Made by a program: the position numbers and the translations under genes
The notes under the pieces: model-generated
What the model was told of the DNA's origin: nothing
Database searches by the model: none
What the model saw: the letters and a program-made list of their open reading frames with translations, nothing else
Part shown: piece after piece, positions 55,415 to 56,530 of the stretch
How positions within the stretch are numbered: position 1 is the stretch's first letter
How the letters are laid out: each line of letters starts with the position of its first letter
Assembly (NCBI RefSeq): GCF_902713615.1
Contig: NC_052162.1
Location: forward strand, 108,651,811-108,715,810
DNA from: Scyliorhinus canicula
Taxonomy: Eukaryota
Reading direction: 5' to 3'
Length of the DNA stretch: 64,000 bases

Positions 55415-56530
55415 GATTATTTTTTCCCCAAATGTTCTGCTATTATTTGTTCATAATTGATTCCAACAATAGATATTAGGCTTATTGGCCTATAATTAAC
55501 TGTTGTTTGCCTCTCCCCCTTTCTGAATAGGGGCGTCACACTAGCAGTTTCCAATCCTCTGATACTTTTCCATAATCCAATGGTTTTTGGAAAATTACAA
55601 CCAATGCATCCACTATCTCTGTTGTTACTTCTTTTAAGTACCTAAGTTGCATCCACCAGGGCCAGGGGGCTTATCTGCATTTAGCCTCATTAGTTTGTCT
55701 AATATAATTCTCCAGTGATTGTCATGGGATTACATTCCTCCCCCATATTCTTTTGTATTAATATGATGCACAAAGTATCTTCCACTATAAAGCCTGATGC
55801 AAAATATCTGTTTAACTCCTCTGACATTTCCTTTTTCCCCAGAAATATATTCCCAGATACGAAAGGTAAAATGCTGGAAAATCTCAGCAAGTCTGGCAGC
55901 ATCTGTAGAGAGAGAAAAGAGCTAAAGTTTCGAGTCGGATGACTCTTTGTCAAAGCTGACAAAGCTTTGACAAAGATTCATCGGACTCGAAACGTTAGCT
56001 CTTTTCTCTCTCTACAGATGCTGCCAGACTTGCTAAGATTTTCCAGCATTTTACCTTTCGTTTCAGATTCCAGCATCCGCAGTAATTTGCTTTTCTCCAT
56101 ATATTCCCAGATACATTTTCTAAGGTGCCTATTTCACTCTTCCTTTTTATATACTTAAAGAAGCTCTAATTGTCAGTTTTTATATTTTTCTTATGTTGCC
56201 TTTGTAGTTTATTTTCTCCCTCTTTATTATCCTTCTGTCATCCTTTGCTGTATTCTGAATTTATCCCAGTCTTCAGGGCTATGTTTGCCTCCTTCTTTAG
56301 TTAGCCATGGTTGGTTATTCCCTCTCAGGATCTTCCCTCCTTACTGGTATGGACATTCACTGAGAGCCACGAATTACCTGATTGAATTTCTGCCACTGCG
56401 TGTTTACTGTCTTTCCTTTTAATCTATCCGCCCCATCCACTTCAGCTAACTCGATCCTCATTTCAATTTAATTCATTTTATTCAATTTAAACAAAGTTGT
56501 TTCCGCTCCATGTTTCTCACTCTCAAACTG
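55415..56530 (-). mobile_element. CR1 ORF2 fragment
   Basis: KEMSEELNRYFAS, KPPGP and ANVTPLF remnants on the minus strand. Confidence 0.7.
55861..56098. mobile_element. Palindromic Penelope-type insert with U3-A8 hammerhead motifs on both arms
   Basis: Inverted arms 55860-55957/55963-56060; 16-bp TSD ATATATTCCCAGATAC at 55845-55860 and 56099-56114. Confidence 0.88.

Follow-up and report, generated by a model that had tools for sequence, protein, structure and literature searches.

Hammerhead ribozymes are located in the terminal repeat of Penelope-like elements (PLEs) (Cervera and de la Peña 2014, PMC4209133), and the closest known counterparts of the motif described here are the U3-A8 minimal hammerheads of Cercyon-type PLEs in Schistosoma mansoni, a class that counts about 1,300 copies in Schistosoma (PMC4209133). 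PLE insertions have hallmarks of their own: the element is adjoined by an inverted, 5'-truncated copy, and one of the ends bears a tail of 30-40 bp (Craig et al. 2021, PMC8557442). Target-site duplications (TSDs) of variable length and AT-rich targets are published hallmarks as well. In PAc, the Poseidon PLE of Anolis carolinensis, both strands of the target were found to be cut and extended by the element's protein, with a preference for ATT within AT-rich DNA (Frangieh et al. 2024, PMC11167929). Reverse transcription of PAc begins internally, at two sites located 111-118 nt after the point where helix II starts, and the tail is the stretch that these sites enclose (PMC11167929). Here, we analysed a window of 64,000 nt from the shark Scyliorhinus canicula (contig NC_052162.1, positions 108,651,811 to 108,715,810 of the forward strand), in which a palindromic insert of 238 bp carries a minimal type-I hammerhead with U3-A8 on both of its strands. 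Our results indicate that this insert is probably a fossil insertion of a very abundant shark PLE-type retroelement, whether as a non-autonomous member or as a copy with heavy 5' truncation.

The insert is bracketed by a perfect TSD of 16 bp, ATATATTCCCAGATAC (16/16). Its inverted arms, counted with the 5 nt of TSD that they overlap (55856-55957 and 55963-56064), are 102 nt long and 95% complementary, and the description in the first-pass annotation of a palindrome flanked by a 16-bp TSD is thus borne out. Within the insert proper (55861-55957 versus 55963-56059) the arms differ at only four positions, which in right-arm numbering are 55977, 55983, 55994 and 56035. The spacer between them forms, together with its neighbouring bases, a 16-nt near-palindrome, TGACAAAGCTTTGACA, while the outer end of the left arm corresponds to about 56059-56064 of the right arm. 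The coordinates of these parts, and of the related copies discussed further below, are collected in Table 1.

Table 1. Parts of the palindromic insert, its two hammerhead motifs and other hammerhead-related copies in the 64-kb window
Feature	Position	Strand	Remarks
Left TSD copy	55845-55860		100% identity to right copy; begins ATATATT; 5' end AT-rich; includes ATT
Left arm, inverted 5'-truncated element copy	55861-55957	sense on -	Without terminal tail
Spacer GACAA, palindrome centre	55958-55962		5 nt; from repeat detection
Right arm, sense copy from hammerhead helix I to inner 3' terminus	55963-56064	+	
One-sided tail	56065-56098	+	34 nt; right arm only
Right TSD copy	56099-56114		Direct-repeat match, 100%
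Minimal type-I hammerhead, + arm	55963-56000	+	AGCT TTGACAA A GATTC ATCG GACTC GAAA CG TT AGCT
Minimal hammerhead, - arm	55920-55957 (read 55957-55920)	-	AGCT TTGACAA A GAGTC ATCC GACTC GAAA CT TT AGCT
U3-A8 body copy, 5'-truncated	968-1043	- (sense)	About 80-84% identity; homology starts GTTAAC, at most 3 nt from predicted cut
U3-A8 tail orphan	4817-4853	inverted	About 21-35 nt; 21/21 match to 56064-56084
Second TSD-flanked inverted PLE-type insert	4847-5020		TSD CTGAAACATGGC at 4847-58 and 5009-20; canonical-core family
Third TSD-flanked palindrome	19443-19669		TSD about GATACTGAG; arms 19453-19530 and 19544-19621 (78 nt, 94%); canonical-core family
Solitary canonical-core copy	38860-39003	-	Starts CACC-TGATGA at helix I; intact-looking core

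The anatomy of the insert follows that of PLE insertions in several respects. An inverted 5'-truncated copy is present, the tail stands at one end only, and the hammerhead lies on the same strand as the tail and upstream of the inferred reverse transcription start sites, so that the Penelope-type assignment proposed earlier fits the published hallmarks (PMC8557442, PMC11167929). Counted from where helix II starts, one arm terminus falls at about 85-90 nt and the other at about 120 nt, a separation of roughly 35 nt. In PAc, as in the shark unit, about 100 nt separate the hammerhead from the element 3' ends, upstream of which it is placed. Described PLE insertions (PMC11167929, PMC8557442) share with the shark insert the two alternative 3' ends about 35 nt apart that define the tail, the presence of this tail at a single end, the abutting inverted 5'-truncated copy and an AT-rich target with ATT. 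The use of both target strands as primers would be a further likeness to PAc, although on the shark side it is read from the anatomy of the insert. Unlike the shark unit, PAc has a canonical C3-G8 core, and its open reading frame (ORF) starts in helix II, where the shark unit has stop codons and no ORF. A point that counts against a PLE origin is that no ORF for a reverse transcriptase with a GIY-YIG domain is linked to the U3-A8 family within the window, and the copy itself holds no ORF. Reverse transcriptase domains do occur elsewhere in the window, in a LINE-type element at 28980-32765 (plus strand), with an Exo_endo_phos ORF at 28980-29555 and an RVT_1 ORF at 30222-31304, and in an RVT_1 fragment at 10549-11538 (minus strand). 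The ORFs at 30222-31304, with an APE endonuclease close by, and at 10549-11538 matched RVT_1 only, and both are unlinked to the hammerhead families.

From the anatomy of the insert and the in vitro work on PAc, we infer a mechanism in which two cDNAs are joined. The TSD would result from cuts that the PLE enzyme makes in the two strands of an AT-rich target, with 16 bp between them, and the priming of reverse transcription on the element RNA would be bidirectional. One cDNA would start at the outer site (about 56094-98) and so include the tail, and the other at the inner site (equivalent to about 56059-64) and so lack it. Both would run to the 5' edge of the hammerhead and be joined head to head within the self-complementary AGCT/TTGACAA stretch, giving a product in the order TSD, inverted arm, 5-nt spacer, sense arm with tail, TSD.

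A near-perfect palindrome with a flanking TSD could also be taken for a fold-back or MITE-type (miniature inverted-repeat transposable element) DNA transposon, whose terminal inverted repeats would be the arms and whose hammerhead-like strings would be incidental. We consider this very improbable, as the insert is asymmetric, with its 34-nt tail on one side only, and most copies of the family are non-palindromic, with a fixed 3' end at about 56094 and graded 5' ends. The TSD lengths of similar inserts in the window also vary (16, 12 and about 9 bp), and the layout agrees with published PLE insertion structures (PMC8557442). Animal non-LTR (long terminal repeat) retrozymes (Cervera and de la Peña 2020, PMC7229834), which have been reported in one chondrichthyan (Li et al. 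2026, bioRxiv 10.64898/2026.07.22.740005), resemble the shark unit in being short, non-coding, hammerhead-bearing and related to the pLTRs of PLEs. However, they are made of tandem head-to-tail units giving circular RNAs, whereas the shark locus is a single inverted duplicate, and an assignment to retrozymes was rejected because no tandem head-to-tail copy is present at the locus.

The transcript of the whole insert is predicted to fold into a hairpin of -170.6 kcal/mol (z = -25.9) in which both hammerhead cores are buried. Such extreme stability, together with sub-threshold matches to Rfam microRNA precursors (best 51.7 bits against a gathering score of 90), would be the case for a microRNA or other hairpin-RNA gene. 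These matches, however, span many unrelated microRNA families on both strands, all below the gathering score, as is generic for long hairpins, and the unique flank at 56108-56127 has zero depth in both RNA runs, with no sign of transcription of the locus. That the palindrome is instead an artefact of assembly is opposed by the perfect TSD and by one DNA contig from the same species with an opposite-strand joint at 55963, from a run that may be the assembly's own sample. Taken together, a hairpin-RNA gene or an assembly artefact is a highly unlikely explanation.

Both arms contain the motif strings given in the first-pass annotation exactly as they were written there, and inspection of the two agrees with the minimal type-I layout that it had proposed. 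In the + arm, the core UUGACAA occupies 55967-55973, with U3 at 55967 and A8 at 55972, and helix I consists of 4 bp (AGCU/AGCU). A bulged A at 55974, that is, a base left unpaired between position 9 and position 10.1, precedes helix II (55975-79/55984-88), which has G10.1-C11.1 and a private U·U mismatch at 55977. The sequence continues with G12A13A14 at 55989-91, A15.1-C-G-U16.1 at 55992-95 and U17 at 55996, and cleavage is predicted between 55996 and 55997. In the - arm helix II is intact, and it is the 15.2-16.2 palindrome that is broken (C/U; ACUU instead of ACGU). The invariant core letters U4, G5, A6, N7 and A9, as well as G12, A13 and A14, are present on both arms, N7 being C, and positions 3 and 8 are compatible with a Watson-Crick pair (U3-A8) on both. 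Each arm carries the family's minimal, dimer-type version of the type-I hammerhead, with U3-A8 in place of the C3-G8 tertiary pair.

The motif was also searched for with a strict descriptor, consisting of a core YUGANRA with either C3-G8 or U3-A8, optionally followed by a bulge, a helix II with 4-7 bp and G10.1-C11.1 as its closing pair, GAAA, a Watson-Crick 15.2-16.2, U16.1, H17 and a helix I of at least 3 bp. In the 64-kb window this descriptor matches the + arm only, and the - arm fails it solely at 15.2-16.2. Since 200 Markov-shuffled 64-kb sequences gave 0 matches, the motif is not a chance match. Rfam models gave a different result, as cmscan found no hammerhead at the locus (E up to 10) or in the whole window (at the gathering score). 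This silence, which taken by itself would speak against a hammerhead, carries no weight on membership, because a minimal hammerhead with the canonical core CTGATGA at 38965-39003 (minus strand) in the same window was missed likewise. The earlier expectation that standard searches overlook this class of hammerhead is supported, Rfam being blind to the motif of the insert and to its canonical-core control.

Position for position, the layout of the motif is that of the canonical-core (CTGAGGA/CTGATGA) hammerhead family of the same window, which has a 7-nt core, a bulged A, a 5-bp helix II, GAAA, a 2-nt palindrome, U and H. It is likewise close to the minimal hammerheads of Schistosoma mansoni, which are of type I without a closed helix III and have a helix I of 4-5 bp, an unpaired nucleotide between 9 and 10.1, G10.1-C11.1, a palindromic 15.2-16.2 and U3-A8. 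Both families also comprise thousands of mostly solitary copies, with some opposite-strand pairs 100-700 bp apart. Unlike that of Schistosoma mansoni, the shark family has a vertebrate host, a helix II of 5 bp rather than 7-8 bp and C as N7; it is apparently far more abundant, is common to two species, and no element encoding a reverse transcriptase is linked to it here. The same compensatory swap of the C3-G8 tertiary Watson-Crick pair is known from the hammerheads collected by Perreault et al. 2011 (PMC3088659), in which U3-A8 covaries, although most of these are complete hammerheads, whose three helices are closed or extended, and they stand in other genomic contexts.

To follow the core through the family, contigs and reads were aligned to 55958-56250 with thresholds of at least 80% likeness and a 5% share for alternative letters. 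The samples were a DNA run from the same species, a run from a second shark species, contigs of an RNA library and raw oligo-dT RNA reads, and the comparison drew on the majority letters inside the 38-nt motif and not on a whole-element consensus. The U3-A8 unit was matched by 7,609 contigs from the DNA of the same species, 13,048 from the second species and 1,072 from the RNA library, along with 1,926 RNA reads. The summed word depth in the body of the unit exceeds that of the unique flank by a factor of about 10^5, a depth ratio that is not to be taken for a copy number. The right flank of the insert at 56128-56250 is itself moderately repeated, with a summed contig depth of about 100-800 against about 4 at the unique 56108-56127. 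Two metagenome scans for family copies returned 0 and 8 matches, and all 8 were chance matches of 21-25 nt in unrelated contigs.

Inside 55963-56000 alternative letters are listed at four positions only, 55977, 55994, 55984 and 55985. Positions 55967 and 55972, the equivalents of 3 and 8, have no alternative letter of at least 5% among the rows listed. Moreover, contigs that stop before 55983 have a loose-end consensus, AGCTTTGACAAAGGGTCATCT, found in three runs, and by their sequence they form a sister subfamily with the same TTGACAA core (AGCT-TTGACAA-A-GGGTC). Because no alternative is listed at positions 3 and 8, and because the sister subfamily has the same core, the alignments show TTGACAA, and not CTGACGA, to be the family consensus in two shark species. 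The first-pass annotation had made its proposal depend on this point, since a CTGACGA family with TTGACAA private to this copy would have spoken against it, and the core is instead family-wide. A minority lineage with C3 and G8 may exist below about 5% of depth, which is a reservation to this conclusion.

The remaining letters of the motif are kept just as widely. U4, G5, A6, A9, G12, A13, A14, A15.1 and U16.1 are intact throughout the family and in the sister subfamily, and neither across the family nor between the two subfamilies is there a loss of G10.1-C11.1, the bulged nucleotide or the palindromic 15.2-16.2. Helix II varies only in pair-compatible ways, the change of the sister subfamily being A10.2 to G, which still pairs as G·U. 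At 55977 about 99% of depth has G where the + arm has T, and the family helix II (GAGUC/GACUC) is accordingly perfect; at 55994, a CpG site, about 11% has A and about 89% keeps G, that is, the CG palindrome within ACGU. The alternatives at 55984 and 55985 are appreciable in the RNA reads only and probably come from one expressed copy. The majority letters thus confirm that each arm has a private defect in its hammerhead, the mismatch at 55977 in the + arm and the broken palindrome at the equivalent of 55994 in the - arm.

Private changes are found outside these two positions as well. Against the family majority the left arm differs at the equivalents of 55994 (G>T) and 55983 (G>C), and the right arm has letters private to this copy at 55977, 56011, 56035 and 56053. 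Of these, 55977 and 56035 differ from the left arm and 56011 and 56053 are common to both arms, which leaves two private substitutions per arm. Since its arms carry private mutations and its transcript would form a near-perfect hairpin of 100 bp and not a hammerhead, the 238-bp copy is an inert fossil.

The alignments also describe the ends of the family. Depth is high up to 56094-97 and drops ~50-fold at 56098, and past 56094 the loose ends continue into AT-rich flanks of unrelated sequence. The 3' end of the family thus lies mostly at about 56094, and the last letters of the tail, 56095-56098 (CTCC), are absent from most copies. Opposite-strand joints are present in other copies of the family.

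Whether the U3-A8 core cleaves is a separate question from its presence. Being family-wide, it was probably a working, compensated variant in the source elements, where it would act, like other minimal hammerheads of PLEs, weakly, as a dimer or with the assistance of a protein. Taken alone, this functional reading stands at about one half in our estimation, and our confidence in the structural and family-level statements is much higher than that. Such a core could plausibly have arisen by CpG decay of C7-G8, which would turn G8 into A, followed by a compensating change of C3 into U. U3-A8 variants have been reported as active in vitro (Przybilski and Hammann 2007, as cited in PMC3088659). The 50-nt RNA built from the majority letters, with G at 55977, has a minimum-free-energy fold that consists exactly of helix I and helix II (-10.0 kcal/mol).

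Several observations weigh against activity, and together they make up the case for a dead hammerhead, in which the master copy lost G8 by CpG decay, C3 changed by chance and the family was amplified regardless, the apparent U3-A8 compensation being a product of coincidence and ascertainment. C7-G8 would be a CpG, and a change of G8 to A within the CpG of a CUGACGA ancestor is a mutational hot spot; many repeat families were screened, so that one double transition is not very improbable. Cleavage by minimal hammerheads of PLEs is poor in vitro and confined to dimers or to assisted conditions (PMC4209133, PMC11167929). PLE insertion in vitro does not require hammerhead cleavage (PMC11167929), so that a successful master copy could carry a crippled core along as a passenger. 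RNA-seq of Anolis has no reads that start at the cut site (PMC11167929), and the raw RNA reads analysed here, from an oligo-dT library in which one or two host transcripts dominate and which is ill-suited to this question, have no pile-up of molecule ends at 55996/55997. The double hammerhead has a nearest-neighbour energy of -16.9 kcal/mol, worse than that of two monomers or of the alternative dimer (-23.6 kcal/mol); as modelled, this fold is thermodynamically possible and not favoured, and it weighs neither for nor against activity.

Despite these points, we regard a dead hammerhead as unlikely. The other conserved core letters, G10.1-C11.1 and the CG palindrome are intact both family-wide and in the sister subfamily, and all the changes in helix II are pair-compatible. 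The same double change has also arisen independently in the PLEs of Schistosoma (PMC4209133) and in other natural hammerheads (PMC3088659), and the reported activity of U3-A8 variants in vitro stands on the same side. A compensated core that worked in the source elements is the reading that we retain, at the strength given above.

Besides the insert, the only pieces of the U3-A8 family in the window are two fragments, at 968-1043 and 4833-4853. The first could be taken for a fossil of cleavage from the position of its 5' end, and this was rejected, since no TSD was found and the 3 nt upstream of the cut are shared. The second belongs to the tail orphan, which sits at the target of the second TSD-flanked insert (4847-5020), the TSD of which overlaps the last 7 nt of the orphan. 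This overlap is reminiscent of the recognition of tail sequence by the PLE endonuclease (PMC11167929). In the second insert one arm has the core CTGAGGA and the other CTGAGAA, a private change of G8 to A that leaves C3·A8, and in its right arm GAAAG jumps straight to a tail-like TCCAACA... stretch. The third palindrome has a one-sided tail of about 40 nt (19622-19660), and both of its hammerhead cores have decayed, while the solitary canonical-core copy has a helix II of GGAGU/GUUCC with G·U pairs. A TSD with inverted arms is therefore a recurrent architecture, found in two hammerhead families of the window.

In each of the window's four copies with a hammerhead, the end or the point of inversion is only a few nt away from the 5' strand of helix I, and not at the predicted cut site. 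The core TTGACAA is near-palindromic (compare TTGTCAA) and adjoins the palindromic AGCT, which gives the 16-nt near-palindrome at the centre of the insert. Longer copies of the family, seen as loose ends at 55963, have a polypyrimidine run and AG immediately upstream. In the Penelope element of D. virilis an intron ends at helix I (PMC4209133), and the arrangement in the shark copies recalls this intron end. It is conceivable, though we think it rather doubtful, that reverse transcription in both PLE families tends to stop or to switch strands at the hammerhead's 5' edge, and that in the U3-A8 family AGCT and TTGACAA could promote a snap-back into TSD-flanked hairpins. A strand switch at this edge has no counterpart in the described PLE mechanism. 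If it did occur, the ribozyme region, and possibly the U3-A8 change itself, would have a role at the DNA level in shaping PLE insertions.

As to the surroundings of the insert, two long ORFs in the window (2499-3410, minus strand, and 58679-59470, plus strand) contain multiple C2H2 zinc fingers and hint at a cluster of ZNF genes. About 2.6 kb separate the insert from the zinc-finger ORF at 58679-59470, upstream of which it is located. A run of 250 N at 62082-62331 corresponds to an assembly gap or a masked stretch.

The novelty that the first-pass annotation had attached to the U3-A8 core was overstated, since this core has been published for natural hammerheads (PMC3088659) and for the minimal hammerheads of Penelope elements (PMC4209133). 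Because the variant and the architecture are both already published, the current picture is unchanged. What is new here is the shark host, the apparent abundance of the family and its sharing by two species, and the literature searched contains no description of PLE hammerheads in sharks. The locus offers a clean signature of PLE insertion, with TSD, inverted arm and one-sided tail, consistent with the Anolis model of two start sites and priming from both strands. The results also indicate that ribozyme counts for vertebrate genomes come out too low with searches based on CUGANGA and with Rfam models. Should the U3-A8 core be active, the shark family would provide hammerheads with the alternative tertiary pair in a natural population of very large size, and its thousands of contigs in two species would amount to a natural experiment on the C3-G8 interaction.

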